From positions 62,001-126,000 of IMG/VR virus record IMGVR_UViG_3300048121_001678: a stretch of DNA of 64,000 bases; one strand, 5' to 3'. Each line of letters opens with the position of its first letter. The first letter of the stretch is position 1. The translations under genes and the position numbers were made by a program. Positions 17,412-53,148 of the stretch are shown one piece after another. The notes under the pieces were generated by a model. It did no database searches. It saw only the letters and a list, made by a program, of their open reading frames with translations, and had not been told where the DNA came from.

Positions 17412-17562
17412 TTTCTTCTCCGTATTCTCTTGCTAATCTTAGACCCCATCCAATCATTAACCCACCAGCAAATGATGACCATAACCATGGATACATACAT
17501 AACCACATCCCTATAATAGCGAATATGCCTGAGTGTCCGTATTTAGTTATTTTTATTTTCAT
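17398..17562 (-). CDS. small two-TM membrane protein (54 aa), not in ORF track
   Basis: manual translation MKIKITKYGHSGIFAIIGMWLCMYPWLWSSFAGGLMIGWGLRLAREYGEENGRY*; short overlaps with both oxygenase genes. Confidence 0.55.
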   Translation of the reverse strand: MKIKITKYGHSGIFAIIGMWLCMYPWLWSSFAGGLMIGWGLRLAREYGEENGRY

Positions 17563-27140: not shown

Positions 27141-27221
27141 TTTAATTTTCTATCACTTTCTAATAAATATCTTAGATGTCATTTCCTTTATAATAATATA
27201 ATAATGTAACAACTAAACTGA

Positions 27222-33200: not shown

Positions 33201-34721
33201 AGGTGTATTTGTTGGCGTAACAGTATTAGATGGTGTAACTGACGCAGTAGGTGTGACTGTCCTAGTTGGTGTATTAGAAGGCGTAACCGTATTCGTAGGA
33301 GTATAAGTAGGAGTGACAGTATTTGTTGGAGTGACCGTAGGTGTCGGCGTAGCGGTTCTAGTCGGCGTCCTTGTAGGACTTACCGAAATACTTGGAGTGA
33401 CTGAAGGAGTAACCGTCGCAGTTCTAGTCGGAGTCCTCGTAGGACTTACAGAAATACTTGGTGTAACCGTAGCGGTTCTCGTAGGTGTTCTGGTTGGACT
33501 TACAGAAATCGAAGGTGTAACCGTCGGAGTTGCCGGTGGAGTTCGAGATGGAGTAACACTCGAAGTTGGTGTTACAGCTGGAGTTCGAGACGGGGTCTTC
33601 GTCGGAGGAGGAGTACTCGTTGGAGTCCTTGTTGGAGTTCTTGTTGGAGTTCTTGTTGGGGTTGGTGGTATCGGGGTAGTTGACGGAGTTGGAGTTGGAG
33701 TTACAGGTTCATCAGAACAACATTCTTCACATGTCTCGTATACACTAGCCGAACAGTCAACAACCGCTTCACAATCAGGTACAACACCCTCAATAAAATA
33801 ACAACATCCGTCACAACTATCTAATTTAACAACTTGACCAGCATTCGGACATGGATTTAAATTAGTGACTTTAACAAACTGAGCATGATATTGATAATTA
33901 CACTCACATTCGGGTTCTATAAAGTCACACCTAACTAAATAAAGACAACACGGTTCACCTAAGTTAGTCACATCATAACCCTGATTAGGTTCCATACCAG
34001 GTTCATATGGTGTTGGCTCATTAGTATTACCCAAACCTAAACACTCATCACAACCATTTGGAAAAAGAGTATTAACTGAACCTATAAATGATATGTTAGC
34101 GGTAGGACAGTTTTCGGCACAACTTCCAACAGCGATTACTTCCCAACAAACATTTATATTATCAGAAAATGCGTCACCGACACTAAAATTATAAACATTT
34201 TGAATACAAGCGACTGATGTTTGCGTTAGACAGTCCCGAATACATGCATATCCAATATTATGAACAATATATCCGTTTAAAACATAATAACTTGGACCAC
34301 TAAGTGTTATGTTATATAAAGATTCTTCAGAGTATACAATTTCCTTACTAACAACAGGTTCATGAATGATGTCACCATCAACCATTTTAACCATATCATA
34401 TTCACCATCAACAACTAAATCTATTGTAGATATAAACTGATATCTATCATCATTTTTATGATACGCTAAGACATTTTCGTCTATAACACCTAATCCATTA
34501 ATTTGAAGATAGTTACCCTCATCATTATAGATGTCTGTAACCTCAGGTGATTGTATATTATCAACATTAAGAGTTAGTGATTCGATTTCACGGAAGTCAA
34601 TTCCTGCGATAATTTCAGGTATATCAAAAGAGTATACACTGTCACCTAATTGAACATCTTCAATGTTCTTTACGGCACCATTTGAAAGTAATACTTTTTG
34701 TCCTAATTTATAACCAGCCAT
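27222..34721 (-). CDS. giant mucin-like protein: N-terminal Hint domain, Cys-rich region, ~2000 aa Thr/Ser/Pro/Val repeats
   Basis: 2499 aa uninterrupted ORF; Hint ends YNITL....[11 protein letters not shown]; repeat tract interrupted once by a ~100 aa globular module; Cys-rich C-terminus. Confidence 0.85.
27480..33700 (-). repeat. degenerate coding tandem repeat, TP(T/S)x(S/T)V hexapeptide with higher-order units
   Basis: recurrent gttggNgtNac units on the plus strand; interrupted at about 30085-30390. Confidence 0.9.
34257..34721 (-). other. Hint (intein-like) domain, residues 1-155
   Basis: [27 protein letters not shown] matches block A without Cys1; terminal His-Asn. Confidence 0.75.
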
Positions 34722-34767: not shown

Positions 34768-37128
34768 CTAAGATTCCTTCCTTAAACTTCCATCATAATG
34801 GTCAAACCTATCATGTTCAGTTGGTGATAGTAATAAAATACCTGGTTTAATATTACCTATTATCGTTTCTTGAAACATATATGACATCCAAGTCTGCTCA
34901 TAAGGTCGAGCCCATTTCTCAGTTAAGAACATTTTTTCATTACCATATTTTGACACCACCTGTGGCCAATTACAATAATAAATTTCACCATGTGCAAATG
35001 GTATACCTTGGAAGCTGTCTATTTTTGTGATTTTAGTTTTTGGTGCATTAGGGTCTAATCCTTGGATAGGTAATAATGGTTTTTCAGGCCAATGCTGTTC
35101 TCTAATTTTTTGAGGTACGTTATACCAAGCCCATTGAACTGTATTGTCACCGTAAAACTCAGTATATGATAACTTTAAAAAGTCAAAGTTGTTTTTCTTA
35201 GCAATTTTAAGCGAATTTCTATATAGGTTTTTAACATATCTGTTAAAACCATTTTTATCTACCTCACCCTCTTTAGGATAAAAGAACATATCATCCTCAA
35301 AAAAGAAATAATAATCATATCCATTTTCTTCAGCGTGTTCTGCAACCCATTGTCTACCACCACAAATACCTAAATTATCTTTTTTAACGTGTTCAATATT
35401 ATATTCTTTACAAAGTTCAACATATTCTTCAGTTGTCGATAAATCCGTAGAGTTATCTAACATCACCCATTGTGGTTTAGTTACAAAGTCCTCATCATAT
35501 TGTTTCATAGATTGAATCAATGTCTTTACCTGATTTGGACTATTAAATGTAATCACATAAAGTGCAACATTATCAATATCTAAATCATTAGTAATAACAT
35601 CAAACTTTAACTCATTAAGTGGTTTATGTGTATCATTTTTAACGTCTTCAAAAAACTTACTAATTAATCCATTACCCTCAATTGGGAAATACTGATAGTT
35701 TTCAGGATATCTATACAGTAAAATAGTGAAAAGAGACTCTTCAGTACCCATATAGCCCGAATTAAGAGTGTTTTTCATTAAATTGTAGTACTCATTGTTA
35801 AAATCTGCAATAGATTCTACAGGACCACCAAAGAAACCACCACGACAAACTTTATTTACTTTAGTACTTGTCATTTCACAAATCTTATCATAATCGAATC
35901 CATGAATTTCTGTCTCCGTTTCATAAGGGAATGCGATGTAACTAATTTTGTCTATTTTTGTTAATTTATCCAATACTTTATCGTGTGTAAAGTATCCAGA
36001 ATGTACGGTATTGGTAATCCCCGCATCTAACCAAAATAAATGTGTTGAATTAAATTGGTCCATTATTTTAGCATCATGTAAAAGATATGGTTTAGACATA
36101 ACCAGTGGATTATACATGTCAAGTTTAGCCTGTGTTGACTCACCTAACCAACCAACCTGATTTATCCAATCAGGATTATTTCTAATAGTTTGTATTGAGT
36201 TGTAAAACTCACCTTTAAACCATTCTTGGTCACGTGTTATAAACATAGTATTATCTCTACTACGTCTTTCAAAAACAAACTCCTCTAATTCTGCATCACC
36301 AAATACTATAAGGTTATAAGGTATTTCCAAAAATTGAGAAAACTTCTCTAAATAATGTTCAAAACTTCTTGACCATCCCTCGGCTAATTCATCTCTTTTA
36401 ATGTTCCATAACCCAGTAACTATTGTAATTCCACTTTCATTCATATCTTCATATATCTCGTTATATATTTCTTTGATGATACCTACTATGTCTTCAGATT
36501 CTTTACCATAAACGTATCCGTTATCATCAAAAGTTTTTATTATTTGTTGTTTTTCTTCATCAGATAGACTTGACCACTCTAATCTAACTACTTTAGGTCT
36601 ATACTTTGAAAAATCAATCTGTTTAAATATTTCATAATCATGTCCTTCGGCATCAATTTTTATAACGTCAAATTCAACAATATTATGTTTTTCTAATAAC
36701 CTTTCAAAAGTAATACACGGTACCTTTACTCTAAGTCCATATTTTTCAACAGTATCTCTATCACCATCACTACCCAATCCATTTTTTGGTGGATATATTG
36801 CACTCATACCCATAAAACAAGTATGCATCTTACCTTCTTGTATCGCTGAAGGACTGATAGTAATCATTTCCACATCACCATTATATGTTGAGATTGCAGA
36901 GTTTTCATACTTATTTTCATCCCCAAAGTTTTTCTTTAATTTTTCAAAATAGTATGGAATTGGTTCCACATATAAACCTTTAAAATCATAAGCATTTGAA
37001 TACCCACTTAACTCATCAAATGTTTGACCATCCATAGCCCCAATATTAATGGTAAATAATCTATGACCTTTCTTACCTAAATGATGTAATATATCATTAA
37101 AATAATCTGTATTTTTTAACTGTATCAT
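34768..37128 (-). CDS. fusion of FkbM-family methyltransferase, HtrL/YibB-like domain and GT2-like glycosyltransferase
   Basis: IGAMDG, VEP, KIDAEGHD (FkbM); TIVTGLW, YNPLVMSK, FWLDAG (HtrL); DNST, NLGICGGR, FFEDD (GT-A); start at 37128 by TAATG overlap. Confidence 0.8.
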   Translation of the reverse strand: MIQLKNTDYFNDILHHLGKKGHRLFTINIGAMDGQTFDELSGYSNAYDFKGLYVEPIPYYFEKLKKNFGDENKYENSAISTYNGDVEMITISPSAIQEGKMHTCFMGMSAIYPPKNGLGSDGDRDTVEKYGLRVKVPCITFERLLEKHNIVEFDVIKIDAEGHDYEIFKQIDFSKYRPKVVRLEWSSLSDEEKQQIIKTFDDNGYVYGKESEDIVGIIKEIYNEIYEDMNESGITIVTGLWNIKRDELAEGWSRSFEHYLEKFSQFLEIPYNLIVFGDAELEEFVFERRSRDNTMFITRDQEWFKGEFYNSIQTIRNNPDWINQVGWLGESTQAKLDMYNPLVMSKPYLLHDAKIMDQFNSTHLFWLDAGITNTVHSGYFTHDKVLDKLTKIDKISYIAFPYETETEIHGFDYDKICEMTSTKVNKVCRGGFFGGPVESIADFNNEYYNLMKNTLNSGYMGTEESLFTILLYRYPENYQYFPIEGNGLISKFFEDVKNDTHKPLNELKFDVITNDLDIDNVALYVITFNSPNQVKTLIQSMKQYDEDFVTKPQWVMLDNSTDLSTTEEYVELCKEYNIEHVKKDNLGICGGRQWVAEHAEENGYDYYFFFEDDMFFYPKEGEVDKNGFNRYVKNLYRNSLKIAKKNNFDFLKLSYTEFYGDNTVQWAWYNVPQKIREQHWPEKPLLPIQGLDPNAPKTKITKIDSFQGIPFAHGEIYYCNWPQVVSKYGNEKMFLTEKWARPYEQTWMSYMFQETIIGNIKPGILLLSPTEHDRFDHYDGSLRKES

Positions 37129-37658
37129 TATTCTATTACTATAAAGTTCTTTTGCCAACCTTTATATTCCGTCCAAGTCTTACCCAAAATCTCTGCGGTT
37201 TCAACTGCAAAATTATATTCATCTTCTCTGTGTGTGTCATCCATAATAATTGGAACTGATGTATTCAATCTATCCCAGTATTTTGCAATATTATTTCTAG
37301 TCTTAACTTGGTCTAAATTTGGTGGTCCATCAACAATAATTAACGAATATTCTTCAGGTAAACTATTGAATACAACTTCAGAATTATACCATCCGTCCAC
37401 AATATCCGCTAAGATGTAATTAGCCTTTGGTGCCAAACGTGTAAATCTTTCTTGGTGTTCAATAGCATATACGTTATGATACCTACTCAGCTCCATAGTA
37501 CCACTACCACTACCAAACTCAATGATTGTCTCACCCTTTTCAATATTTTCATCAATCCAAGAATAACACTCCATAGATATTGCCCAACCATCAAGGTTAT
37601 TCATATTAACATCCAATTCCTTTAACTTAGGAAATATATAATTTAAATCTGTATTCAT
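37128..37658 (-). CDS. class I SAM-dependent methyltransferase
   Basis: IIEFGSGSGT, IIVDGPP, IMDDT.R. Confidence 0.75.
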   Translation of the reverse strand: MNTDLNYIFPKLKELDVNMNNLDGWAISMECYSWIDENIEKGETIIEFGSGSGTMELSRYHNVYAIEHQERFTRLAPKANYILADIVDGWYNSEVVFNSLPEEYSLIIVDGPPNLDQVKTRNNIAKYWDRLNTSVPIIMDDTHREDEYNFAVETAEILGKTWTEYKGWQKNFIVIE

Positions 37659-38533
37659 AATTGCTCAAAAAACTTATAAAAACTTATTTTACCATCCAAA
37701 AATTCAGGAGTAACAGACTTATCAGTTAAGTTTGAATCGTCGTGATACCACGTATTAAATTTGAATGAGTGATAGTTTTCAGGTTTATCATACACCATTG
37801 TAGACATCATTGCTTCATGATTAAGAAGAAATTCTTTACTTAAACACATCTGAGAGTATTCCTCAAATCTTTGAAATAAATTAGGTAACTTACTCACATG
37901 ACCACCTATTATACCACCAATAGAAAGGGAGTCATACATGTGGTCTTTTTCTAAAACTTCATTCAACTTTCTATGGTCATGAAAAAATAATGTGTTTCTA
38001 ATATCAATTAATTTATCACCAAGCCAGTTGTTAATTTTAGGTATTGTATTTTCATTAAAAATACCATCATAGGTGTATCTATATTTGTTCATTGATAATC
38101 CTGTGATTTTATCCGCATTTGAATTATACCTTCTCGGATATAAACCAATATGTGATAAACCACAGTCAAACCAATATAAGTACTCTAAACCTTCTACCAT
38201 TTCGTCTTCCATCAAAGCAATTTTAGCCCATCCAACTTCTAAATAAAATTTAAACAATTCAGGGTTTTTTTCTTTGACTTCAATCATCTTTTTACTATGT
38301 CTTATATCTTGTAATTCTTTGACTTTAATAGTCACATTAGTTACTCCATTTTCATCTAAAATTTCTTGTAGTGATTCCGCAGTATTAGACCCAGTATAAC
38401 AAATAATTTGAACATTCATCTGAGATAATTGTACTAATGAATGAGTATATCTATCCCATCTTGCCTGTACTTTATGTCCAAAGAATGGGAAGTCTCCAAT
38501 TCCGAAATATAAAAAAGTTACAATTTTTGTCAT
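37655..38533 (-). CDS. HtrL/WlaTC-like glycan-modifying protein
   Basis: KIVTFLY, YWFDCGL, GGIIGG; paralogous pattern to the middle domain of 34768..37128. Confidence 0.6.
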   Translation of the reverse strand: MTKIVTFLYFGIGDFPFFGHKVQARWDRYTHSLVQLSQMNVQIICYTGSNTAESLQEILDENGVTNVTIKVKELQDIRHSKKMIEVKEKNPELFKFYLEVGWAKIALMEDEMVEGLEYLYWFDCGLSHIGLYPRRYNSNADKITGLSMNKYRYTYDGIFNENTIPKINNWLGDKLIDIRNTLFFHDHRKLNEVLEKDHMYDSLSIGGIIGGHVSKLPNLFQRFEEYSQMCLSKEFLLNHEAMMSTMVYDKPENYHSFKFNTWYHDDSNLTDKSVTPEFLDGKISFYKFFEQL

Positions 38534-40101
38534 TTTCTAAAGTAATAGTCTTCTAATAATAAACAGTCCATTTTAGTCTTATCATAGACCTTCAACGCAT
38601 CCGTGTATCTTGATAGGATAGGTTTTCCATTTACATTAAATGAAGTGTTTAATAATACACCTATACCTGATTTTTTCTCAAACTCCGTCAGTAGATTATA
38701 TAGCCAAGGATTTTGCTCTTCAGTTACAGTTTGAACACGAGCAGTACCATCAACGTGAGTTATAGAAACTAATCTCTCTCTCCATTCTTCTTTAACCGTT
38801 GGACAGAAACCCATCCATCTACTCTCACCCTCAAAGTCAAAGTATTTAGACACATCCTCTAATTTACATACAGGTGCAAATGGTCTATACCATTCTCTAT
38901 TCTTAACCTTAGCATTCAATATGTCTTTCATATCAGGATAAGCAGGATTGCAAATAATACTACGATTACCCAACGCTCTTGGTCCATGTTCTGATGTACC
39001 TCTAACAACACCAACAATTTTACCATCATTTAGGTCGTCTGTTAATCTTTCCAAATCTAACTCACTACCTCTACGTTCTTCAACGTGGGACATTAATGTG
39101 TGTTTATCTAAGATAGGTATACCAGCATATGTCACATCAACCGCCTTTTCAGGTTTCATATGATTCAAAATCATACCCGTAGCAATACCACAATCATTAG
39201 GGTTAGGTGGAACAAAAACAGGACGGTCTAATACTTGTTGTAACTTGGTATTAAGTAGAATATTAAGAGCACATCCTCCAACTGTTATCAACGGTATATT
39301 AGGATATTCATCTAAGAACGGCTGAGCCATCTCCATAAACACATTTTCAAACGCAGTCTGTGATGTTTTAGCAACATCCCATGAAGTTTGACCTGTTAAT
39401 CTATTCTGAATATCAAATACCAATCCTGTTTGTTCACCTAATTCACCCAAAAACTCAATATAGTTCAAACCGTCAGGTTTTCTTCTATAGTAGTTTTCAA
39501 AGTGTGGTAACCATTCATTATTCACGTTACCATAAGAACAAAGTCCCATGATTTTACCTGAATAAACTAAGTTACCAATATTTAATGCCGGTTCCTTACG
39601 AATATCCCCCATATAGTCACCAAATGACATATAAGGAAATCCTAAATCTAAATTGTATTTATCTAATAATGTAATTTCTGTTCTACCAGACGCTAAATAC
39701 ACGTTATAAAAACCATCATTACCACCACCATCAAAAGATATTATTAATGCGTCATCATAATCTGTCTGATACAGACCACATGCGGCATGACTAAGGTGAT
39801 GTAATTGATTTACGTGTTTTTTAGCAGGTATAAGTTGTTCATAGTGTACTTTGGTACCTCCTTCCAATGTATCCGAATTTAAGTAGTAACACGTATCGTA
39901 TTCACTGATACCAAATTCATCTTCAATGTATTTTAATATTTCTTTTAAAAGATAAGGTCTTGTGTAAGAAACGAGGTACTGTGCGTACCCCGCATTCTTT
40001 TCACTTAAAAATCTTTCAACTTCAATTACCGTAATTAATTCTCCATTCTCTTCAACCGCAACCGCAGCATTGTGAGAACCGTAAAATGATATATTTGCCA
40101 T
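38530..40101 (-). CDS. O-carbamoyltransferase (NodU/CmcH family)
   Basis: SHNAA, EVER, HHLSHA, DGGG, GKIMGL, GGCALN, D.G, GPRALGNRSI, RPFAP, HVDGTARVQT, NTSFN. Confidence 0.93.
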   Translation of the reverse strand: MANISFYGSHNAAVAVEENGELITVIEVERFLSEKNAGYAQYLVSYTRPYLLKEILKYIEDEFGISEYDTCYYLNSDTLEGGTKVHYEQLIPAKKHVNQLHHLSHAACGLYQTDYDDALIISFDGGGNDGFYNVYLASGRTEITLLDKYNLDLGFPYMSFGDYMGDIRKEPALNIGNLVYSGKIMGLCSYGNVNNEWLPHFENYYRRKPDGLNYIEFLGELGEQTGLVFDIQNRLTGQTSWDVAKTSQTAFENVFMEMAQPFLDEYPNIPLITVGGCALNILLNTKLQQVLDRPVFVPPNPNDCGIATGMILNHMKPEKAVDVTYAGIPILDKHTLMSHVEERRGSELDLERLTDDLNDGKIVGVVRGTSEHGPRALGNRSIICNPAYPDMKDILNAKVKNREWYRPFAPVCKLEDVSKYFDFEGESRWMGFCPTVKEEWRERLVSITHVDGTARVQTVTEEQNPWLYNLLTEFEKKSGIGVLLNTSFNVNGKPILSRYTDALKVYDKTKMDCLLLEDYYFRK

Positions 40102-40102
40102 G

Positions 40103-41371
40103 TTATAGTGTTCCTGTTAATCTGTCACACCAACCTTTAGATGACGAATAAGGCCATACAACCCAATAAGCTGGTTTTTCAGTTATGTTAAATTGTCTCC
40201 AAACTTTACAATAACCATCTGGGTCATTCATCATTCGGTCTATTTCTGCCCTATCAGCATCCTTTCTGTGAATAGTGTTATCTTCGCTATCGTGGAAAGC
40301 AACTACCCAATATTCATAATCTTTTTCAGGTACTTGCTCATAACCCACATCAATACAATGTTTATAGATAGTCGCAAAACTTTCTAACCATTCTTCTTTA
40401 CTCTCAAAAGTATCGATACCTGGGTTAGGTGGGTAATGTTTATCTAACGTATATTGTTGTACTCCTCTTACACCAAACTTTAATCCTGAATACTCTTCGT
40501 ACTCCTCCAAAGTTCTATTAGGACCAAAACCATACTTACCATCATGACCTTCTTGAGATTCACCATCCATACCAAATAGCTTTCTATTAGTTAAGTGAGA
40601 ATGACTGTTTTTGTTACCCCATTCTTTGTCATCATCCCATTGCTTAGTTCTACCCTTACGAGTATATTCATGCCAAATTAAGACTTTATGTGGGTGGAAC
40701 ATATCATAACCCCATGTGAATGCTCTTGCAGCTATTGAAATCTCCTCACCGTGGAAGTAATACTCAGGATTGTGTTGTACCTCTTCACTGAACTCACCTA
40801 ATGTGAAACAGAAGTGAGCAGAGTAGAATCTTGCGGGTACTGGTGTGTCTAACTCTCTCCAATTTGGAATTGTCTCAGGTAAAAAGAATACCGCACCTTC
40901 AGGAATAAATCGGTCAAATGCCATTCTCCATGGCTCTTGTACTCTAGCACCTGGGTCATTATCAGGGTCAAATGATGAAACATATCCTGTCAATAATGGT
41001 TTTGGTATCCCCATACCTTGGAGTTGTTTTACCATTTTAATCATCTCAACATCCCAATCTTTTGCAAATCTCATATGTGAGTCAATCTGTAAAGTATACA
41101 TCTCTCCTCCATATAATTGTTGAATCGAGTGTCTTGCCCAACACGCACCTTTAGAGTCCTCATAAGGGATGTCTAAAATACGAAAACGTTCGTCATCTCT
41201 ATATTTATCTAAATTGTCAAATCCATCTTCAGAATGATATTGTCTACAAATACCAAATACTAAGTTTTGTGGTCTTTTCGCATTCATTATCATATCCTCA
41301 ATTGTGTTAACTAACTCAGGGTCTCGATATGACGCCACTTGTATGAAAATCTTTTGTGCTCTTCTTGCCAT
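40103..41371 (-). CDS. GT60-like GlcNAc transferase (GlcNAc family)
   Basis: IFIQVASYRDPEL, KGACWAR, LQIDSHMRF..DWD, FHGEEI...ARAFTWGYD.FHP....WHEY. Confidence 0.85.
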   Translation of the reverse strand: MARRAQKIFIQVASYRDPELVNTIEDMIMNAKRPQNLVFGICRQYHSEDGFDNLDKYRDDERFRILDIPYEDSKGACWARHSIQQLYGGEMYTLQIDSHMRFAKDWDVEMIKMVKQLQGMGIPKPLLTGYVSSFDPDNDPGARVQEPWRMAFDRFIPEGAVFFLPETIPNWRELDTPVPARFYSAHFCFTLGEFSEEVQHNPEYYFHGEEISIAARAFTWGYDMFHPHKVLIWHEYTRKGRTKQWDDDKEWGNKNSHSHLTNRKLFGMDGESQEGHDGKYGFGPNRTLEEYEEYSGLKFGVRGVQQYTLDKHYPPNPGIDTFESKEEWLESFATIYKHCIDVGYEQVPEKDYEYWVVAFHDSEDNTIHRKDADRAEIDRMMNDPDGYCKVWRQFNITEKPAYWVVWPYSSSKGWCDRLTGTL

Positions 41372-41433: not shown

Positions 41434-41607
41434 ATGAAACTATTAAAAACAATAAAAGGTTTGGTTAAAGAATCTGAAGACAATTTAGAAAAAGCATTAA
41501 ATTCTAATGTTAATTCTAAAGAGTTAGAAGTACTAAAGGAAAATTATGAAAATTCCCTTAACCTAATATCATTATACGAAAACTTAGAAAACGAAAAAGA
41601 GGATTAA
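41434..41607 (+). CDS. small acidic helical protein
   Basis: MKLLKTIKGLVKES...; TATTTAT at 41423-41429; start could be 41428. Confidence 0.55.
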   Translation: MKLLKTIKGLVKESEDNLEKALNSNVNSKELEVLKENYENSLNLISLYENLENEKED

Positions 41608-41627
41608 TTTCTTAACCCTCTCTTTTT
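41594..41627. terminator. possible bidirectional terminator
   Basis: imperfect inverted repeat AAAAAGAGGATTAA/TTAACCCTCTCTTTTT between convergent genes. Confidence 0.45.
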
Positions 41628-41651: not shown

Positions 41652-44600
41652 CTATTTTGTAATATACTCCACTTCAATCTTATCAATATCTTTTCTTTCT
41701 GCTTGTATAAAGTAATAACAATCAATTTTATTACTAAATAAGTTACCGTTACCAATATGAACTACGTTGTTCTCAATTTTTTTAACATATAAATTTTGAT
41801 GTGAACCTATAGATGTTAATTGAACAGTAATCGTATCGGGGTCTACTAAATCTAACCAATATTCAGGTAATTCAATCTCCTTATCATTAAGTTGTCTACC
41901 TCTAATGTAAACACCGTGTTCTGGTCCCTCCAAGTTACCATGCTTCAGTCTCATTCCCTGTTCTTTCTTCTCGTTATTTGGGTGAGGAATATCAAAGGCC
42001 TTTGACGTGGCAGTTAAGTTACCTTGACCATCCACTCTAAATACAGGTGCCTGATTTGAATCATATCCCGTAGCTATCGCAACTGTTGGAGCCGAACTTA
42101 ATAGTGATAACACGTCACTATATACATCATCTGCCTCGATAAATACTCTAGGTACATTTAACGGTGTCGAAATAGATTTAAATATGTTTAGACTTTCGTT
42201 TGCACTTGACGCAAAATCAAGATTATTACTACCCTGAGTTATAGTACGAAGTGAAGATAATGTACCATCTGTAGAATAAATGTTAGTATTACCCGCAGAA
42301 GTTATATATCCCGCGTCGTTATTAAATCCACTATTACTAATATTACCCTTAGTAAGTTTCTTCTGATTATTTGAGGAATCTACAACCACAAAGAAATCAC
42401 CGTCCCCATTGGATGTCGATGTCGTTAATTCAGATAAGTCAACATTAACATTACTACCATCAACATCAATAAGAGTACCAGCACCTACATTTAAGGATAC
42501 TGAACCACCCAAGGAAGCTGAACCACCACCTGTTAATCCATTACCACCAGTAACAGTGATAGATGAGTTCGCTAACGAACTATTAGGTACATTGGATAAT
42601 CCTAATGCAATCGTACCATTTGTTGTGATTGGCGAACCTGAATCAACATCGATACCGTCTGAACCTGAAATAGCCACAGAAGTAACTGTACCCTGACTAT
42701 TAGTATATGGTAATGCGGCTATTAATGCTTTTTTAGCATTATTGTCAGAATCACTGACAAGTATATAATCAGTATCCTCAATATCATTTGGATATGCACC
42801 CGCGGCAAGAATAATGTTATCAGTACCTAAGTAATCAACATCCACAGTAATCGAACCAGATGTCCCCCCACCCGATAAACCTGTACCCGCAGTTACATTA
42901 GTTATATCACCAACGGTTATAGAACCCCCTAATGATGTTGAAGTACCATTAATGGTTATACTTGAATTTGCCAGTGAACTATTAGGTACGTTGGATAATC
43001 CTAAGGCAATTGTGCCTGAACTTGTGATTGGCGAACCTGAATCTATATCTATACCATCTGAACCTGAAATTGCAACTGATGTTACTGTACCCGACGTATT
43101 TGTATATGGTAAATCAGAAACTAAACCTTTCTTAACATTATTATCACTAGCATCATGGTAAACTATAGTATCGCTTAATCCAATACCTGTACCTTCTAAA
43201 TTAGTCGCAGAATCAATGAAATTATCGGTTCCTGTATAATCTAAAGAGACCGTCACTGAACCAGATGCACCACCACCTGATAAACCTGTACCTGCGGTTA
43301 TATTAGTAATGTCACCAACTGTCACAGTACCACCTAATGATATGGAACTACCATTAATAGTAATACTACTATTAACGAGTTGTGAGTTAGTAATTTGACC
43401 GGCACTAACATCAGAAATAATATCATCACCAGCTATTTGACCACCTAATGAAATATCACTTCCCGCAATATCAATAGAAGAATTAGTTAATGAACTATTA
43501 GGTACGTTTGATAATCCTAATGTTATTGTTCCATTTGTTGTGATTGGCGAACCTGAATCAACATCGATACCATCTGTACCCGAAATTGCAACAGATGTAA
43601 CTGTACCATCATTTGTTGTAAACCCAGCATCGTTATTAAATCCACTTAATTTAATATTAGCTTTAGTAAGTTTTCTTTGTACATTTGAAGAATCTATTAC
43701 CGCGAAGAAATCACCATCACCATCAGATACTGATGTTGCCAATTCTGAAAGGTCCACAGATATTGTATCTGCAGCGACATCAATAAGTGAACCCGCACCA
43801 ACATTAAGTGTAACTGCTCCTGAAGTACCCCCACCTGTTAAACCGTTTCCTGCACCTACTGAGGTAATATCACCCTGATTATTACTGAATGGTAAATCAG
43901 AAACTAATCCGAAATTAACCAACTGTGAACCATCACTAAATAATATATGTGAACTAAGTCCGATTGATTGTGAACTTGCATCAGTTGCAGATAAAATAAT
44001 ATTATCAACACCCGTATAATCAACATTAAGGGTAACCGCACCTGATGTACCACCACCAGTTAAACCATTTCCAGCACTCACACCTGTTATGTCTCCAACA
44101 TTAATTGAACCACCTAAAGATACTGATGTACCATTAATAGTTATAGATGAGTTTGATAATGAACTATTAGGTATACTATTAAGGTTAGCACCACTACCAC
44201 TGAACGAACCAATCACTTGACCTTGGAATGTCGCATCTTTACTCGAAGAGTCAAAGGTCACTGCAGTTCCTGTTTCACCATTGGTTGATAATATTAAATT
44301 ATTATTAGAGAATATTCTGAAATTGTTGGACCCATCATTGTCAAATGCCCCGACATTGGTCATTCTAAGACCGTCCCCATTCTGTGAAATTCTTAAAACG
44401 CTATTAGCATAAACAGTATCCGCAGTTATTGAAGTAAGACCCGCAATAGAAGATGCGGTCCCTCCAAGTGATACAGAAGTAGAACCAATAGTAATACTTG
44501 AATTGTCTAAAGATGCGTTTGGAATAGTCGAGAAAGAAAGTGAACCTGAACCGTTAGTTAATAATACAGTATTCGCTGACCCATCAGATGTTGGGAAAGA

Positions 44601-44717
44601 ATAATCTTCGTTAAATTGTATTGACCCGTTATTAGCTATGCTAAGACGCGTTGTTGTATTTGTTCTCAGATTAATACCTGATATATTACTATAGAAAACT
44701 CCGTTTTTTGTTGCCAT
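41652..44717 (-). CDS. tail fibre protein with internal repeats and C-terminal chaperone-like domain
   Basis: G/S/T-rich GDITxVxAGxGLxGGG repeats; C-terminal KAFDIPHP...HGNLEGPE.GVY.RG...LPEYW..LV. Confidence 0.8.
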   Translation of the reverse strand: MATKNGVFYSNISGINLRTNTTTRLSIANNGSIQFNEDYSFPTSDGSANTVLLTNGSGSLSFSTIPNASLDNSSITIGSTSVSLGGTASSIAGLTSITADTVYANSVLRISQNGDGLRMTNVGAFDNDGSNNFRIFSNNNLILSTNGETGTAVTFDSSSKDATFQGQVIGSFSGSGANLNSIPNSSLSNSSITINGTSVSLGGSINVGDITGVSAGNGLTGGGTSGAVTLNVDYTGVDNIILSATDASSQSIGLSSHILFSDGSQLVNFGLVSDLPFSNNQGDITSVGAGNGLTGGGTSGAVTLNVGAGSLIDVAADTISVDLSELATSVSDGDGDFFAVIDSSNVQRKLTKANIKLSGFNNDAGFTTNDGTVTSVAISGTDGIDVDSGSPITTNGTITLGLSNVPNSSLTNSSIDIAGSDISLGGQIAGDDIISDVSAGQITNSQLVNSSITINGSSISLGGTVTVGDITNITAGTGLSGGGASGSVTVSLDYTGTDNFIDSATNLEGTGIGLSDTIVYHDASDNNVKKGLVSDLPYTNTSGTVTSVAISGSDGIDIDSGSPITSSGTIALGLSNVPNSSLANSSITINGTSTSLGGSITVGDITNVTAGTGLSGGGTSGSITVDVDYLGTDNIILAAGAYPNDIEDTDYILVSDSDNNAKKALIAALPYTNSQGTVTSVAISGSDGIDVDSGSPITTNGTIALGLSNVPNSSLANSSITVTGGNGLTGGGSASLGGSVSLNVGAGTLIDVDGSNVNVDLSELTTSTSNGDGDFFVVVDSSNNQKKLTKGNISNSGFNNDAGYITSAGNTNIYSTDGTLSSLRTITQGSNNLDFASSANESLNIFKSISTPLNVPRVFIEADDVYSDVLSLLSSAPTVAIATGYDSNQAPVFRVDGQGNLTATSKAFDIPHPNNEKKEQGMRLKHGNLEGPEHGVYIRGRQLNDKEIELPEYWLDLVDPDTITVQLTSIGSHQNLYVKKIENNVVHIGNGNLFSNKIDCYYFIQAERKDIDKIEVEYITK

Positions 44718-44816: not shown

Positions 44817-47800
44817 TTATATTACTTGTACCCATCCAAACGATTTATAAATGTAGACACCCTCGTCTCCATCGGTTTGGTACACCAACAAACCTGTTGC
44901 CGGACTTCCGATTGCGTCTCTCTGTGTTTCTGTCATCCTTGGGAATAAGAAACCTTTTGTTGTTGACGACACTTCAAGAACTGCACTTGCTGCTGGTGCC
45001 GAAGCTCCGATTGCGACTGCAGATGCACTCTCATCAACTACTAATGTAGTTCCATCAACTGTGAAGTCACCACCAGTAAACGCTAACGTATTACTATCTT
45101 GTGTAACTGTTCTATTACCACCTAATGTTCCATCACTATTAAAGATGTTAGTGTTAACTGACGCACCAACTATAATATCCACAGTATTTGAACCTGTACC
45201 ATTGATGGTTACAGATGAATCTGAAGATGTGAAGTTTAACGTATCAGTGTTTGAACCCGCTGTTGGGTCAACACCTGAAGGTAAATTTATCGTTTTAAAG
45301 ATGTTCTGAGTAGAACCTAAATCAGTGTTAGTGATTGTAAAGTTAGGATACGTACCTGAAGTTGTTATACCTGTACCGTTAGATAAAGAAACTACTTTAT
45401 CGTAAAGGTTAGTTGAACCTTCAGCGATATCATCAGTATCTAAAACAACAGCACCTGTCGCTCCATTTACAGAACTTACTGAGTCAGTATTATCAATCTT
45501 GTCCCATTCAGCACCATTATAAAGAAGGTAGTCACCAACCTGAAAATCAATTGTACCACTACCTAAATCTTGATTACCTGCAACAGAAACACGATACATA
45601 TCACCCGCATCACCTGTTCCATCAGCTAATGTTGGAGTGTTAGTAGCCGCATTCCAGTTACCTTTGTATTCAAATGCTGAAGAAGGTAATTGTGAAGAAG
45701 GTACTCTACCGTTAGCATCAAGTGCCGCGTAACCGTTAGCTGAACCTTTTCTTGAAACAACCTCAACGAATGTATCATCAACAGAAATAACCATTGTATC
45801 CGTCGCCTGTGCAACAGTATCAATACCGTCACCACCTTGGAATGTAGATGTATCACCCAAATCTAATGTTTGAGTTCCACTATCACCCGCCAATGTTAAT
45901 GATGAGTTAGCTAACTTAGCGTTAGATACAGAAGAATCAACTAATTGTGAACCGTTTATTGTTTTGTTTGTTAATGTTTGTGAACCGTCTAATGTTACTA
46001 CTGTAGAATCAATAGCAATTGTTAAATCATCACCTGAAACTGAAGTACCAATACCTGTTCCACCAATCCATGTGATTGTTGAACTACCATTTGGAGTAAC
46101 TGAACCTGTATCACCTGAAATTGCAAATAAAGATATATTTCCCGCATTTACAGAGAAGTCAATCGCACCAGCACCATCAGCAACTATTTCTGCCGAATTA
46201 TCAGCCGATGTAAATGACAATGTACCACCAAGAGCAGTACTATTATTAGACGAACCAGCTCCATCAGCACTTGTAGTGAATGATGAGTTAAGTAATTTAG
46301 CATTTGTTACATTACCGTTAAGAATCTTATCAGTAGTTACAGAATCATTATCAATTGAAGCACTCAATACAACTGCACCTGTACCATCAAATGAAACTGC
46401 TGGTGCAGTTATATCACCTGAGATAGAGAAGTTTTGTGCCGATGCCAATGAACCTGCAGTACCACTAGCATTACCTGTTAAGCTACCAACAAAAGATGTT
46501 GAGGTAACCGAAGTTAAACCAGCGAGTGTAGTTGAAGATGCACCTAAACTAATTGATGTTGTACCAACTGTTAGACTTGAATTAGCTAATTTAGCATTTG
46601 TTACATTACCATCAAGAATTTTAATCGTAGTAACCGCATCCGAATCAATTGAAGCACTCAATGCAACTGCACCTGTACCGTCAAACGAAATTGCTGACGC
46701 TGTGATATCACCACTAATTGAGAAGTTTTGTCCCGACGCTAAAGCCGTAGCCGTATCAGCGTTACCTGTAACATCACCTGTTAAGTCACCACTAAACGCA
46801 GTAGAAGTTACAGATGTTAAACCAGCTAACGTAGTTGAAGACGCACCTAAGACAATTTCCGTCGTACCAACAGTTACACTGTCATTTACTAAAGCTGAGT
46901 TTGGAACATTTGTCCAAATACCAGCAATATCAACAGTATTACCATCATTTCTTGTTAATGTTGCAGTACCACTTGAGAACGTCGCACCTGTTACAAAAGT
47001 ATCAGACGCTGAAGTTGCGAAACCACTAATTACAATGTCAGACTCAAGACCACCATTAATAGAAAGTGTTAAATCACCTGTAGGTATATCTAATGAACCC
47101 GCAGTAATAAATGGTAATTCAAATGAACTTGAGATTGTACCTGTACCCCCGACAGTTAAACCATATGTTCCATCGTAAGACAAATCATCAATTGCGTTTA
47201 CTGTCAATGTGTTACCATTACCCTTGTTATCAGTTAATGTAATTACGTTATCCGCAATAGCACCTGATTCAATTAGGTCAATTGAACCAGTTAACTGAAC
47301 AGATTGTCCGTCATTTCTAGTTACTTCAATAATACCTGTTGATTGGGTATAAGAACCACCTGATACGAAAGTATCCGTACCATCGATTCCTGTAATTGTT
47401 ATATCTGATTCGTCAGAACCATTTACCGATAATGTGATTGTTCCTGCGTTATAAGAACCCGACGTAATGAAGGGTAATGCAACAGGAGTTGCACCAATAG
47501 TTCCTGAACCTGCCAAAGCAACATCCCAAGAACCACCATAAGTTACACCTGTCACTGCTTGTACAGTTAAAGATGTGTTTGTACCGTCAATATCAGATAA
47601 CGTTATTGTATTGTTTGCAATTGCACCCGATACTAATACGTCATCACGGTAAGACATTACACCGTTTACGTCAGACGCTAAAACCCTCACATCTGTTCCT
47701 GATGCAAGACCTTCAATTCTAACTGGTGTTGTACTTCCAGAGATGTGTACTAACGTAGCTGGCGATAGTGTACCAAACCCGTGTCTACCACTGTTGTCAA

Positions 47801-47873
47801 TGATTTCGCGAGTAATTTCGTTAGTTGTGAATTTCAATCCCGTAGAAGAAGAATTTAAACCATTTGTAGCCAT
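44817..47873 (-). CDS. tail fibre/adhesin protein
   Basis: VTNAKLAN repeats, GYAALDANGRVP..QLP, YKGNWNA.TNTP.L, C-terminal SSTTKGFLFPRMT..QRDAI.SPATGL. Confidence 0.8.
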   Translation of the reverse strand: MATNGLNSSSTGLKFTTNEITREIIDNSGRHGFGTLSPATLVHISGSTTPVRIEGLASGTDVRVLASDVNGVMSYRDDVLVSGAIANNTITLSDIDGTNTSLTVQAVTGVTYGGSWDVALAGSGTIGATPVALPFITSGSYNAGTITLSVNGSDESDITITGIDGTDTFVSGGSYTQSTGIIEVTRNDGQSVQLTGSIDLIESGAIADNVITLTDNKGNGNTLTVNAIDDLSYDGTYGLTVGGTGTISSSFELPFITAGSLDIPTGDLTLSINGGLESDIVISGFATSASDTFVTGATFSSGTATLTRNDGNTVDIAGIWTNVPNSALVNDSVTVGTTEIVLGASSTTLAGLTSVTSTAFSGDLTGDVTGNADTATALASGQNFSISGDITASAISFDGTGAVALSASIDSDAVTTIKILDGNVTNAKLANSSLTVGTTSISLGASSTTLAGLTSVTSTSFVGSLTGNASGTAGSLASAQNFSISGDITAPAVSFDGTGAVVLSASIDNDSVTTDKILNGNVTNAKLLNSSFTTSADGAGSSNNSTALGGTLSFTSADNSAEIVADGAGAIDFSVNAGNISLFAISGDTGSVTPNGSSTITWIGGTGIGTSVSGDDLTIAIDSTVVTLDGSQTLTNKTINGSQLVDSSVSNAKLANSSLTLAGDSGTQTLDLGDTSTFQGGDGIDTVAQATDTMVISVDDTFVEVVSRKGSANGYAALDANGRVPSSQLPSSAFEYKGNWNAATNTPTLADGTGDAGDMYRVSVAGNQDLGSGTIDFQVGDYLLYNGAEWDKIDNTDSVSSVNGATGAVVLDTDDIAEGSTNLYDKVVSLSNGTGITTSGTYPNFTITNTDLGSTQNIFKTINLPSGVDPTAGSNTDTLNFTSSDSSVTINGTGSNTVDIIVGASVNTNIFNSDGTLGGNRTVTQDSNTLAFTGGDFTVDGTTLVVDESASAVAIGASAPAASAVLEVSSTTKGFLFPRMTETQRDAIGSPATGLLVYQTDGDEGVYIYKSFGWVQVI

Positions 47874-52800: not shown

Positions 52801-53148
52801 AGAGTAAATTGCGTGTGTTGAATTACCCTCAAAAACCTCAGCACTAATAACCACAATCTCACCTTGACCATCAACACTAATAACTTTCTCAATTGCATTA
52901 TCATTACAATTAGGGTCGTTATTCTCTACCCTAACCGTGTATTGGGTTCCGGCTTGTGTACCAACAAGTTCGGTAATAGGAATACCACCCTTTAAATCTT
53001 CTCTTGTTATATTTGAAACAGGCGAGGTTAGACCATTTATAAGTGGGAGAGCACCTGTCCAATTGTCAGGGTCAGGAGGTGTTACGGTTACAGTAAACGG
53101 ACCAAGTGAATTCGATGATAGGGTTAACCTTAGTATAATTGATGACAT
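49822..53148 (-). CDS. mucin-like Thr/Pro-rich virion protein with duplicated globular module
   Basis: ~400 aa TP tract; two AGPELG...PEELCETVDF...FNGLDLWYDAGN modules. Confidence 0.8.
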   Translation of the reverse strand: MSSIILRLTLSSNSLGPFTVTVTPPDPDNWTGALPLINGLTSPVSNITREDLKGGIPITELVGTQAGTQYTVRVENNDPNCNDNAIEKVISVDGQGEIVVISAEVFEGNSTHAIYSASIPLVKSEDLVVKFSNTIGTTVGGSITFSPTITILAGQLSGQSDELINPLNYDLVDRGNVSYSDFLYNGQPSIGGDFGSINGITFSGTPSPTPTSTPTPTPSSGVVVSPTPTSTVTPSVTPSSTISGVTPTPTVSVSVSNTPGVSQTPTATVTSTPQSTVTPSVTPSVSVSNTPGVSQTPTPTNTVTPSNTPAVTSTSTPTGTPVTTSTNTPTVTASNTQTPTPTSTVTSTPTGTPVSTVTPTPSNTPGVSQTPTPTNSVTPTSTPQSTVTVTPSNTATPTQTPNATLTPTPTVTASVTSTPDSTPTPTVSVSDTPGVSQTPTPTISSTPDVTPTNTPSVTSSVTPTVTPSVTLTSTPTSTPTSTPTGTPGSTPTPSVTSSVTPSPTADVTPTPSVTSSVTPSPTADVTPTPSVTASVTPSSTPGATSTPAPTSTVTPSVTASVTSTPQPTRTSTPTVTSSVTPSISVTPTSSVTPSVTGTPAPTKSPTPTVTPSSTPPEIQQVYFNAGPELGKENPEELCETVDFSVYTNRFINVSNASVGDLVFLDPDLATPFNGLDLWYDAGNTLNGLGTVKFRIDVSGAITQIAECPVPPSATPTSTPTVTPSSTPEVTVTPSVTPTSSVTPSVTGTPAPTKSPTPTVTPSTTPPEIQDSFLSAGPELGRPSPEELCETVDFTIYTNRFINVLDALVGDVIFLDSDLATPFNGLDLWYDAGNTLNGLGVTKFQINNQGVITQIAECPVPPSATPTSTPTTTPTPTVTPSISVTPSTSLTPTPSVTSSMTPTTSFTPTPTKTPTVTPSSAANSPAYLLIENEADATNIGTFMFNAGAAFYGFNNGSGPTSSSDMASYMSYFNQNAGTELVPAIVTSDIPQTSGGEDSFGNPIEQYKFLTVEIPSGTVSGNAWYTWLIPDESIGGPGTANRAREIEVSYGSGAQGLSNKVMTTAYFNYTVVNPTGYLNGTYRVYTTYGSEDFRLDNTTTTIFFKGGLVS
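50545..51395 (-). repeat. ~400 bp direct repeat, two copies about 450 bp apart
   Basis: long identical stretches such as gtacttgtcggagtagccgatggtggtactggacactcagcaatttgagtaata at ~50546 and ~50996. Confidence 0.85.

Follow-up and report, generated by a model that had tools for sequence, protein, structure and literature searches.

The window analyzed here is the whole 64,000-nucleotide stretch of an IMG/VR virus record (IMGVR_UViG_3300048121_001678, positions 62,001 to 126,000) that belongs to a 297-kb freshwater jumbo phage. It encodes a glycosyltransferase of the GT60 type in one operon with a giant protein built of Pro/Thr (PT) repeats. This arrangement raises the question of what such an enzyme does in a phage and whether the repeat protein is its substrate. 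The family GT60 is assigned to "prokaryotes and protists" in PMC7185993, and in the literature searched, functions are known only for the protist members, with nothing that ties PF11397/GT60 to phages or to bacterial substrates. The characterized GT60 enzymes in that literature are polypeptide GlcNAc-transferases, and biochemical evidence is lacking for all prokaryotic and phage members. The reading that we consider likely, with moderate confidence, is that the phage enzyme is an initiating cytoplasmic polypeptide HexNAc-transferase for the phage's own PT-repeat proteins; its activity, donor, acceptor residue, and order of action are inferred. The operon and its boundary comprise the following features.

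41594-41625, minus strand: terminator-like hairpin, 14 pairs and a T run, between the upstream fiber-like gene and the GT60 operon
40103-41371, minus strand: GT60-type (PF11397) GT-A glycosyltransferase, 422 aa, ATG start, soluble
38530-40101, minus strand: NodU/NolO-type O-carbamoyltransferase, 523 aa (Pfam Carbam_trans_N and Carbam_trans_C; PHROG 1601; NCBIfam NodU, partial)
37655-38533, minus strand: 292-aa protein, weakly HtrL/YibB-like, with a 4-nt overlap with each neighbor
37128-37658, minus strand: 176-aa protein, class I SAM methyltransferase-like (Methyltransf_24 or sugar O-methyltransferase-like), a lead only
34768-37158, minus strand: 796-aa fusion of an FkbM methyltransferase and two tandem GT-A domains
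27222-34721, minus strand: 2,499-aa PT-repeat protein, the proposed main acceptor, beginning 46 nt past the stop of the fusion gene

The product of the first gene is a GT-A glycosyltransferase of the PF11397/GT60 type by sequence, motif, and fold. It matches the Pfam family "GlcNAc" (230.9 bits, cut-off 21, E 4e-68) over profile positions 2-43 and 96-350, and PHROG 24687, "glycosyltransferase", with an E-value of 8e-165. After the catalytic domain (about residues 6-300) comes a beta-rich C-terminal domain (about 333-422) that is conserved. The ASYRD (13-17), DSH (97-99), and GEE (208-210) motifs fall on conserved columns of a 43-sequence alignment, in which D97, H99, E209, E210, and H234 are invariant and A13, Y15, R16, D17, and G208 are at least 90% conserved. 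A DxH motif in place of DxD is a trait described for families GT27 and GT60 (PMC7185993), and the phage protein has both the DxH (D97-S-H99) and the distal C-terminal histidine (H234) that characterize it. No hydrophobic segment is present, the highest 19-residue Kyte-Doolittle mean being 0.76, and by hydropathy the protein lacks a signal anchor of the Golgi type II kind found in Gnt2 and the OGNTs. Only one of 162 homologues reaches a 19-residue hydropathy of 1.6, and that segment is internal. An earlier note, made without database searches, had reported this ORF, the three motifs, a GT60/GlcNAc family membership, and the absence of a signal anchor; all of these claims held, and the HMM check that it had suggested was positive with Pfam.

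A sequence search of the PDB gave no solved relative. A structure model (pLDDT 95) predicts a Rossmann-like GT-A core. The top Swiss-Prot fold match is Dictyostelium Gnt1 (Q8T1C6, E 6.7e-25; next match 3e-10), followed by about 25 GT27 polypeptide GalNAc-transferases (ppGalNAc-Ts), which also account for all of the top 20 matches in the PDB. AFDB clusters named "Glycosyltransferase family 60 protein" match the model as well. Gnt1 is the sole GT60 entry in Swiss-Prot, so the ranking cannot separate hydroxyproline-type from Thr-type enzymes. An identity as a GtfA/GtfB enzyme of the serine-rich repeat protein (SRRP) type, which are GT-B proteins of family GT4, is excluded, since the model and every fold match are GT-A. 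No profile match to DNA glycosyltransferases (TAGT, T4 a/b-GT type) was found in the ORF.

The GT60 ORF heads a tightly packed operon that ends in the 2,499-aa PT protein, with successive intergenic distances of +1, -4, -4, -31, and +46 nt; the carbamoyltransferase starts 1 nt past the GT60 stop. The 796-aa fusion consists of an FkbM domain (about residues 1-230), an HtrL_YibB-type GT-A domain (240-495), and a second GT-A domain (about 520-796) that bears an invariant E-D-D motif. Its two-GT-A part is the conserved partner of GT60 enzymes elsewhere, referred to below as the partner; it is predicted to fold as two GT-A domains, with top matches to LH3 and COLGALT1, which act in collagen glycosylation, and to the polymerase K4CP. 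The 176-aa protein has no Pfam or NCBIfam match, and a homologue of the 292-aa protein, ORF332, occupies the equivalent position in phage XacN1. The hairpin is a probable operon boundary, which rests on a pattern match only, as regional counts of such sites do not exceed those in shuffled sequence; a promoter scan of the region likewise gave nothing above shuffles. Nucleotide-sugar epimerase genes were looked for in the phage genome and none was found, so the phage presumably uses host UDP-sugars.

The proposed main acceptor is 33% Thr and 15% Pro and contains 249 TPT, 61 TPS, and 86 SVTPT motifs. TPTVT and TPSVT units, which the earlier note had seen in the adjacent proteins, are indeed present (21 and 18 copies, respectively, in this protein). 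A weak Hint/intein-like N-terminus and Cys-rich globular islands accompany about 2,000 residues of TPT/SVTPT repeats. The repeats form diverged higher-order units of 222, 252, and 282 nt with 65-80% matches; this divergence, together with lengths that are all multiples of 3, indicates old coding repeats and not an assembly artefact. Besides this protein, the window encodes three further PT-repeat proteins, listed here, and the rest of the genome two.

25662-27140, minus strand: 492-aa protein with PT linkers joining Cys-rich modules, a proposed acceptor
49822-53148, minus strand: 1,108-aa protein with long PT tracts, a proposed acceptor
53276-58930, minus strand: 1,884-aa protein with PT tracts and weak SprB-repeat, DUF642, and Y_Y_Y matches, a proposed acceptor

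PHROG and Pfam scans of the large neighboring ORFs gave almost no structural annotation, and nothing but the position of the PT proteins among tail-fiber-like genes points to a virion location.

The association of GT60, the partner, and PT proteins is not confined to this phage. GT60 and the partner form a conserved module in two jumbo-phage lineages and in many bacterial phyla. Among close phage relatives, the partner is found in 76 of 80 loci and a PT ORF in 40 of the 43 loci with full flanks, and nearly all of these relatives have both GT60 and PT content; in a few relatives (L012, L017, L047), no PT ORF lies within 10 kb. Within 1 kb of GT60, 53 PT ORFs are found in these loci against 10.7 expected. 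Bacterial loci give 16 PT ORFs within 1 kb where 4.2 are expected (Poisson 8e-6). Overall, PT proteins of unrelated architecture adjoin GT60 4-5 times more often than they occur further out in the same loci. The p-values are too favorable because the loci lack phylogenetic independence. Off-frame PT-like ORFs in high-GC loci (L141, L143, L111, and L095 at 13544-13807) are artefacts and were excluded as support; the background counts still include them, so that the enrichment test errs on the conservative side.

No match came up when the locus was compared by megablast with 50,697 phage records, and the only cultured phages matched by tblastn were XacN1, Xoo-sp13, and the Stenotrophomonas phages CM1 and RAS14. 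XacN1-like jumbo phages constitute the second lineage (35-49% identity) and share a module of GT60, carbamoyltransferase, HtrL-like protein, and partner, which adjoins either a baseplate-proximal giant protein with PT linkers or PT-rich ORFs. XacN1 virions contain at least two PAS-positive glycoproteins, for which the XacN1 authors name ORF334 as a candidate, the bands themselves being unidentified. ORF334 is a homologue of the phage enzyme described here.

On bacterial chromosomes, the PT ORFs adjacent to GT60 are scattered over many clades and phyla of the tree, and the neighboring proteins are unrelated apart from the repeat. One class comprises small PT proteins with a twin-arginine signal. 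On a genuine Saprospiraceae chromosome, a PT protein sorted by the type IX secretion system (T9SS) lies by a GT60 that shares 71% identity with that of the phage. VgrG spikes whose tails are of the (TP)n, (EPTP)n, or (SEEPPP)n type are found near GT60 in nine Burkholderiales genomes, and one such pair of GT60 and VgrG-(TP)n sits within a type VI secretion (T6SS) cluster; a literature search on VgrG with glycosylated PT repeats gave nothing useful. Natural fusions of GT60 and the partner occur at two loci (L138, L154). About 50 of the 80 bacterial loci have no PT neighbor within 10 kb. The one such context examined by Pfam, from Tunturiibacter of the Acidobacteriaceae (L136), places GT60 beside a GT9 heptosyltransferase, an HldE-like kinase/adenylyltransferase, and an epimerase, an arrangement that resembles an LPS-core locus.

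The nearest characterized relative by fold is Gnt1, which belongs to the same Pfam family, is 24% identical over residues 1-332, and, like the phage enzyme, is a soluble protein of about 420 aa with a DxH motif; Gnt1 is cytoplasmic. The beta-rich C-terminal domain of the phage enzyme is extra and lies outside the aligned region. Gnt1 is the UDP-GlcNAc:hydroxyproline-Skp1 GlcNAc-transferase, and its acceptor, Hyp143 of Skp1, is absent from bacteria and phages, Skp1 being a eukaryotic protein. An orthologue of the Skp1 pathway was considered and rejected, as no linked prolyl 4-hydroxylase turned up in about 180 GT60 loci and there is no Skp1 acceptor. Trypanosoma cruzi OGNT1/2 and Dictyostelium Gnt2 share a CAZy family by name with the phage enzyme. 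The T. cruzi OGNT has GlcNAc-alpha-O-Thr activity on mucin repeats that are rich in Thr and contain Pro, and other transferases extend the first sugar. Dictyostelium Gnt2 likewise starts mucin-type O-glycans on Thr, with PsA as an acceptor; the earlier note had stated this, and a modB/PsA literature search gave nothing useful. Both OGNT1/2 and Gnt2 are type II Golgi membrane proteins, whereas the phage enzyme is anchorless and so must act in the cytoplasm.

Other systems resemble the phage locus in part. The GT27 ppGalNAc-Ts form a sister family to GT60 with a GT-A fold, a DxH motif and distal His, and an accessory domain C-terminal to the catalytic one, but they are only 10-15% identical and Golgi-resident, and their ricin-type lectin domain is not convincingly matched (rmsd about 12 Å with the C-terminal domain included). 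Virion glycosylation in mycobacteriophages (Freeman et al. 2023) and in chloroviruses and mimivirus also relies on virus-encoded cytoplasmic glycosyltransferases that act on the virus's own structural proteins and are encoded beside structural genes. Those enzymes belong to other families, and their targets are reportedly capsid and tail-tube C-termini, or N-glycans of the major capsid protein; neither a giant PT-repeat "mucin" substrate nor a GT60 enzyme is known from any of them. In the serine-rich repeat (SRR) adhesins of Gram-positive bacteria, GtfA/GtfB start O-GlcNAc addition in the cytoplasm on a huge low-complexity repeat protein, accessory glycosyltransferases encoded by the substrate gene extend the glycan, and SecA2/Y2 export tolerates the modified cargo. 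Their GtfA/B are, however, non-homologous to the phage enzyme, and their repeats are Ser-rich and not Pro/Thr.

In the mechanism that we propose, the GT60 product would be a soluble, Mn2+-dependent (DxH), retaining GT-A enzyme active in the cytoplasm of the infected cell. The first sugar would most likely be a HexNAc taken from a UDP-sugar of the host, for example UDP-GlcNAc, and placed on Thr/Ser within the Pro/Thr repeats of giant fiber-like proteins of the phage itself, which would be the 2,499-aa protein and five or more further PT-repeat proteins. The double GT-A enzyme of the operon may then extend the glycan, and the two methyltransferase-type proteins and the NodU-like carbamoyltransferase may decorate it, to give mucin-like, glycan-coated virion appendages. 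The donor is not fixed by family, as Glc is the suspected donor of a T. brucei GT60. For the earlier note's inference that the enzyme initiates glycosylation of the PT repeats, the support is comparative only, namely the recurrent PT adjacency and the XacN1 glycoproteins, and the LPS-heptose context in Acidobacteriaceae stands against it. GlcNAc as the sugar, Thr rather than Ser or hydroxyproline as the acceptor, and a first-acting role, all proposed in that note, remain inference.

The strongest competing explanation, which remains possible, is that GT60 and its partners serve the synthesis or modification of a non-protein glycan, such as the host LPS core or another envelope polysaccharide, perhaps for superinfection exclusion or receptor masking, the PT proteins being mere neighbors in a structural module. 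In its favor, HtrL_YibB, which both the partner and the 292-aa protein match, takes its family name from the LPS-core locus of E. coli; the Acidobacteriaceae GT60 has GT9, HldE-like, and epimerase genes on its flanks, and a GT9 gene lies near the XacN1 module; and NodU-type enzymes carbamoylate oligosaccharides. Against it, the characterized relatives that come nearest in sequence and fold are polypeptide transferases without exception, the PT association recurs with unrelated proteins in bacteria, which have no phage structural module, and GT60 occurs within a T6SS cluster, adjoining VgrG-(TP)n. It is unlikely that the enzyme works in the manner of Gnt1 on hydroxyproline, and not Thr/Ser, after a phage 2OG-Fe(II) prolyl hydroxylase has acted on the PT repeats. 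The top fold match is the Skp1 hydroxyproline GlcNAc-transferase, the genome has two or three PF13640-type 2OG-Fe(II) oxygenases (one at 17543-18154 of the window), and algal GT60 domains are fused to a "procollagen-lysine 5-dioxygenase". The oxygenase in the window is, however, below the Pfam cut-off, the phage oxygenases lie at least 20 kb from GT60, and about 180 loci have no oxygenase homologue near GT60, the single match (L183) being weak and 8 kb off.

There is also little to commend the view that the acceptor is a different protein, be it one of the phage, such as capsid or tail tube, or a host factor, with PT adjacency reflecting shared late expression. Mycobacteriophage glycosyltransferases are reported to target capsid and tail-tube C-termini, and the identity of the XacN1 glycoprotein bands is not established, yet a P/T-rich repeat is the only feature common to GT60 neighbors across phages and bacterial phyla. 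Least credible is hypermodification of phage DNA by glycosylation of hydroxymethylated bases. The third domain of the 796-aa protein weakly matches TAGT (E 0.0011, 19.4 bits against a cut-off of 27.5) and PHROG 842, "beta-glucosyl-HMC-alpha-glucosyltransferase" (E 1e-5), and the genome has a ThyA-family gene. The ThyA match, however, is a full-length one to thymidylate synthase (321 bits) with nothing indicating a hydroxymethylase, bacterial chromosomes carry the module in T6SS and surface-protein contexts, and the GT60 relatives act on polypeptides.

A bolder reading can be considered, which taken as a whole we hold to be rather more doubtful than probable. GT60 and the double GT-A partner would form the center of a cytoplasmic system for mucin-type O-glycosylation of Pro/Thr repeats that is widespread in prokaryotes and phages and has so far gone undescribed. 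Only routes that tolerate modified cargo would let its substrates out of the cytoplasm, and these may be twin-arginine export (sometimes followed by T9SS sorting), T6SS firing of VgrG-(TP)n, or virion assembly of giant PT fibers. Jumbo phages would have taken the module from their hosts at least twice, from Saprospiraceae-like Bacteroidota for the present phage and from Burkholderiales-like donors for the XacN1-like phages.

Should the proposed mechanism be correct, bacteria and phages would have a cytoplasmic equivalent of eukaryotic mucin-type O-glycosylation. This would account for the Pro/Thr "linkers" of phage fibers, VgrG spikes, and twin-arginine-exported surface proteins, which have long been noted without an explanation, and would identify the enzyme responsible for the virion glycoproteins of XacN1, likewise unexplained to date. 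A glycan coat on the fibers could, in turn, alter adhesion, host range, and resistance to proteases, as well as recognition by grazers or immune systems.

The gene at 40103-41371 (minus strand, 422 aa) very likely encodes a member of the PF11397/GT60 family, as indicated by every feature testable here. Its product matches Pfam PF11397 "GlcNAc" with 230.9 bits (cut-off 21) and PHROG 24687 "glycosyltransferase" with an E-value of 8e-165, and the ASYRD, DSH and GEE motifs reported in an earlier note are present exactly as described. The alignment used here, of 43 homologues with identities down to 34%, shows no variation at D97, H99, E209, E210 or H234; replacement of DxD by DxH is a published hallmark of GT27 and GT60 (PMC7185993). 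The AlphaFold model built from this alignment (mean pLDDT 95) has as its top Swiss-Prot match the Dictyostelium Skp1 hydroxyproline GlcNAc-transferase Gnt1 (E 6.7e-25, 24% identity, residues 1-332), followed by a long series of GT27 polypeptide GalNAc-transferases. Each of the 20 best PDB matches is a ppGalNAc-T, and the matched AFDB clusters include entries called "Glycosyltransferase family 60 protein". No segment hydrophobic enough for a membrane anchor was found in this protein or in 161 of 162 homologues; since the enzyme is soluble, it is inferred to act in the cytoplasm.

GT60 comes first in an operon on the minus strand whose genes are tightly packed, at spacings of +1, -4, -4, -31 and +46 nt.

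Genes of the GT60 operon, in order
Gene 1, 40103-41371, minus strand: GT60 enzyme
Gene 2, minus strand: NodU/NolO-type carbamoyltransferase
Gene 3, minus strand: 292-aa protein, weakly HtrL/YibB-like
Gene 4, minus strand: 176-aa protein with the look of a class I sugar-type methyltransferase (language-model features only)
Gene 5, minus strand: 796-aa fusion of an FkbM methyltransferase and a region of about 560 aa
Gene 6, 27222-34721, minus strand: 2,499-aa protein with Pro/Thr (PT) repeats
Gene 7, minus strand: 492-aa PT protein

The region of about 560 aa in the fusion, referred to here as the partner, is modelled as two tandem GT-A domains (pLDDT 91), the second with an invariant E-D-D motif, and it is closest in fold to LH3, COLGALT1 and K4CP, which are two-domain enzymes. 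Between the operon and the fibre-like genes upstream lies a terminator-like hairpin; those genes have weak PHROG "minor tail protein" matches. Two fibre-like proteins of about 1,020 aa (41652-44717 and 44817-47873) contain internal repeats of the type NSSL-NSSIT-xG-S-SLGG, are rich in Ser, Thr and Gly, not Pro, and have C-terminal PHROG matches to unknown function and minor tail protein.

The PTVT-type repeats that the earlier note had seen in neighbouring genes were likewise confirmed, as the 2,499-aa protein (33% Thr, 15% Pro) contains 249 TPT and 86 SVTPT units. Three further proteins with PT tracts are encoded in the window and two elsewhere in the genome, and the repeat DNA is made of diverged higher-order units with lengths in multiples of three. 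GC rises to 0.45 at 26000-34000 and GC skew is strongly positive (+0.35 to +0.43) despite a minus-strand gene like its neighbours; the ACN/CCN codons of the repeats account for this shift, and a strand switch or foreign island was rejected. The N-terminus of the 2,499-aa protein (33687-34721) has a weak, below-cut-off match to a Hint/intein-splicing domain (E 0.003), and Cys-rich islands of unknown function lie at residues about 160-340, about 1335-1470 and in the final 70. About 50-55 kb past the window end are two giant PT-repeat proteins of 1,126 and 1,675 aa (genome 174235-177612 and 177643-182667), the latter partly concanavalin/LamG-like by eye; two GT2-type genes follow 8-17 kb further on (genome 190193 and 199453).

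The source IMG/VR record (297,164 bp; CheckV completeness 99%), of which the window covers bases 62001-126000, represents a jumbo phage of low GC (about 0.33-0.38). A close GT60 homologue is encoded on more than 500 related viral contigs, and homologues in protein databases number in the thousands, many from contigs of about 300 kb. The recently described "moraphages" are a freshwater lineage of 200-307 kb with predicted Bacteroidota hosts and four core glycosyltransferase families; the present phage answers to that description and may belong to the lineage. A 1,884-aa PT protein (53276-58930) has weak matches to SprB-repeat, DUF642 and Y_Y_Y domains, and since these typify Bacteroidota surface and gliding proteins, a Bacteroidota host is compatible.

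Among 80 close phage relatives (72-92% identity), 76 have the partner within 10 kb of GT60. Of the 43 loci with complete flanks, 40 contain a PT-rich ORF, which often ends no more than about 100 bp from the GT60 start or comes straight after the partner. In one relative (L022, 9189-9971), the ORF immediately upstream of GT60 has a collagen-like (GTS)n repeat, not PT repeats. The module of GT60, carbamoyltransferase, HtrL-like protein and partner recurs at 35-49% identity in a second, distant jumbo-phage lineage that includes two phages of Xanthomonas (XacN1 and Xoo-sp13), two of Stenotrophomonas and uncultured contigs measuring 270-317 kb. Facing it in XacN1 are the genes for the baseplate and for a protein of 3,313 aa that contains PT linkers; in five uncultured relatives (L171, L176, L177, L179 and L183) a PT-rich ORF lies on the opposite strand, 5-7 kb downstream of GT60. 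Stretches coding for PTPTPTP occur at several sites in XacN1 and in Xoo-sp13, with none for the reversed-pattern control. In the XacN1 virion, at least two periodate-Schiff-positive proteins were reported by the authors of that phage, who named ORF328 (GT9) and ORF334 as candidate enzymes (PMC5852040); ORF334 is a homologue of the present GT60.

Species-representative bacterial genomes yielded more than 550 homologues, and analysis was limited to the best 80, from Bacteroidota, Acidobacteriota, Gemmatimonadota, Verrucomicrobiota, Pseudomonadota, Myxococcota, Actinomycetota and others. The partner adjoins GT60 in 34 of these 80 loci, and in two the enzymes form a single ORF (L138, 7351-11802, 1,484 aa; L154, 17-3646, 1,210 aa), natural fusions which argue that both act in one pathway. 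Sixteen PT-rich ORFs lie within 1 kb of a bacterial GT60, versus 4.2 expected from the remainder of the same loci (Poisson 8e-6, which overstates significance because the loci are not independent). In a maximum-likelihood tree, the PT-adjacent homologues are spread over many clades and phyla, and their neighbours have only the PT repeat in common. Small PT proteins, in which a twin-arginine-like N-terminus precedes pure PT repeats, occur in Myxococcota, Vicinamibacterales, Halieaceae, Acidimicrobiaceae, Alphaproteobacteria and Ectothiorhodospiraceae.

Small PT proteins beside bacterial GT60 genes, by locus (nearly all twin-arginine-like)
L090 8525-9670
L091 2687-3442
L095 8000-9769
L121 6591-7466
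L125 6925-7449
L127 9147-9494
L129 11491-12252
L134 8424-9998
L135 6748-7473
L138 858-2696
L140 6807-7469
L151 11494-12129
L153 11283-11873

These signals (RRxF/L-L/V-x plus a hydrophobic stretch) were judged by eye without a Tat predictor, and are compatible with glycosylation in the cytoplasm followed by Tat export. The Halieaceae proteins also have, by eye, a C-terminal TM helix and basic tail resembling a sorting signal.

In Saprospiraceae and Lewinellaceae, T9SS-sorted PT proteins adjoin GT60. One Saprospiraceae MAG contig of 230 kb (L090, 8525-13113) is genuinely chromosomal (UvrB, NAD kinase, Omp85, OmpA, NIF3). Here GT60 and partner, each 71% identical to the phage proteins, adjoin a sulfotransferase and a PT protein that bears a T9SS sorting domain; the segment has the GC of the phage (0.34), and it offers a lead to a host in these two families as well as a sign of recent gene exchange. 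In nine Burkholderiales genomes, a T6SS VgrG spike lies 1-6 kb from GT60 and ends in 50-130 residues of (TP)n, (EPTP)n, (TEPPP)n, (SEEPPP)n or (EEPAASD)n.

VgrG genes with repeat tails, by locus
L132 12288-15152
L112, L131, L142, L149, L161, L162, L164, L167: about 15-17.6 kb in each

The T6SS cluster of Ralstonia sp. 25C runs TssF, TssA, fimbrial-like gene, GT60, VgrG, TssM. Further PT neighbours include LamG-like proteins as well as one that is peptidase-like and has a mucin-like tail; another PT protein is preceded by a gene for a TMEM260-like protein O-mannosyltransferase. In Gemmatimonadaceae (L101, 8438-9232; L103, 9227-9967), the ORF directly upstream of GT60 shows a further repeat-bearing architecture: about 100 aa at the N-terminus resemble a PqqD domain by eye, a hydrophobic segment is present, and the tail is PT-rich. 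In the tree, the phage clade falls within Bacteroidota and that of XacN1 with Burkholderiales, a placement suggesting that phages acquired the module from bacteria on two separate occasions.

Most bacterial GT60 loci have no PT neighbour. The sole such context examined by Pfam, on the Tunturiibacter lichenicola chromosome (Acidobacteriaceae; L136, 4971-11257), places GT60 divergent from genes for a GT9 heptosyltransferase, HldE-like PfkB/cytidylyltransferase, epimerase and ATP-grasp protein, an LPS-core-like context without a PT protein; the acceptor may therefore differ within the family. Since HtrL/YibB is itself an LPS-locus family, a lipid or glycan acceptor is plausible for at least some members; as an explanation of the present enzyme we regard it as unlikely. 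A role of the cluster in DNA modification has nothing but sub-threshold matches in the partner to support it and is contradicted by the bacterial contexts of the module. Hydroxyproline remains a possible acceptor that cannot be excluded, because the phage genome encodes three 2OG-Fe(II) oxygenases of the prolyl-hydroxylase type (PF13640).

Oxygenase genes
Window 17543-18154 (scores below the Pfam cut-off)
Genome 26916-27191
Genome 272129-272440

Against it, none of the three is near the glycosyltransferase cluster, and no oxygenase is linked to GT60 in any of about 180 loci. With neither a Skp1 acceptor nor a linked hydroxylase, the phage enzyme was rejected as a Gnt1 orthologue, and without an anchor it was rejected as a Golgi-type OGNT or Gnt2.

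Mycobacteriophages are known to encode glycosylation of their virions, and chloroviruses are known for self-glycosylation. These systems rely on other enzyme families and act on other targets. The literature searched yielded no mention of GT60/PF11397 in a phage and none of a substrate in bacteria. The earlier note had interpreted GT60 as a cytoplasmic initiating GlcNAc transferase for the neighbouring repeats, a reading that is supported and extended here, still without biochemical proof. On balance we lean towards GT60 glycosylating PT-repeat polypeptides; whether the sugar is GlcNAc could go either way. The following steps are inferred from family, fold and neighbourhood, and none has been shown. 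GT60 would transfer the initial sugar to Pro-flanked Thr/Ser of the repeats, and a HexNAc donated by a host UDP-sugar is probable (the phage genome has no epimerase-type nucleotide-sugar gene); the partner would add further sugars and, in this phage, methyltransferases would O-methylate and the NodU-like enzyme O-carbamoylate the glycan. GT60 would work as mucin-type initiators do and, by analogy, as the non-homologous GtfA/B of serine-rich-repeat adhesins. Its place of action would be the cytoplasm; virions and T6SS spikes are assembled there, and the Tat pathway exports from it proteins that have already folded.
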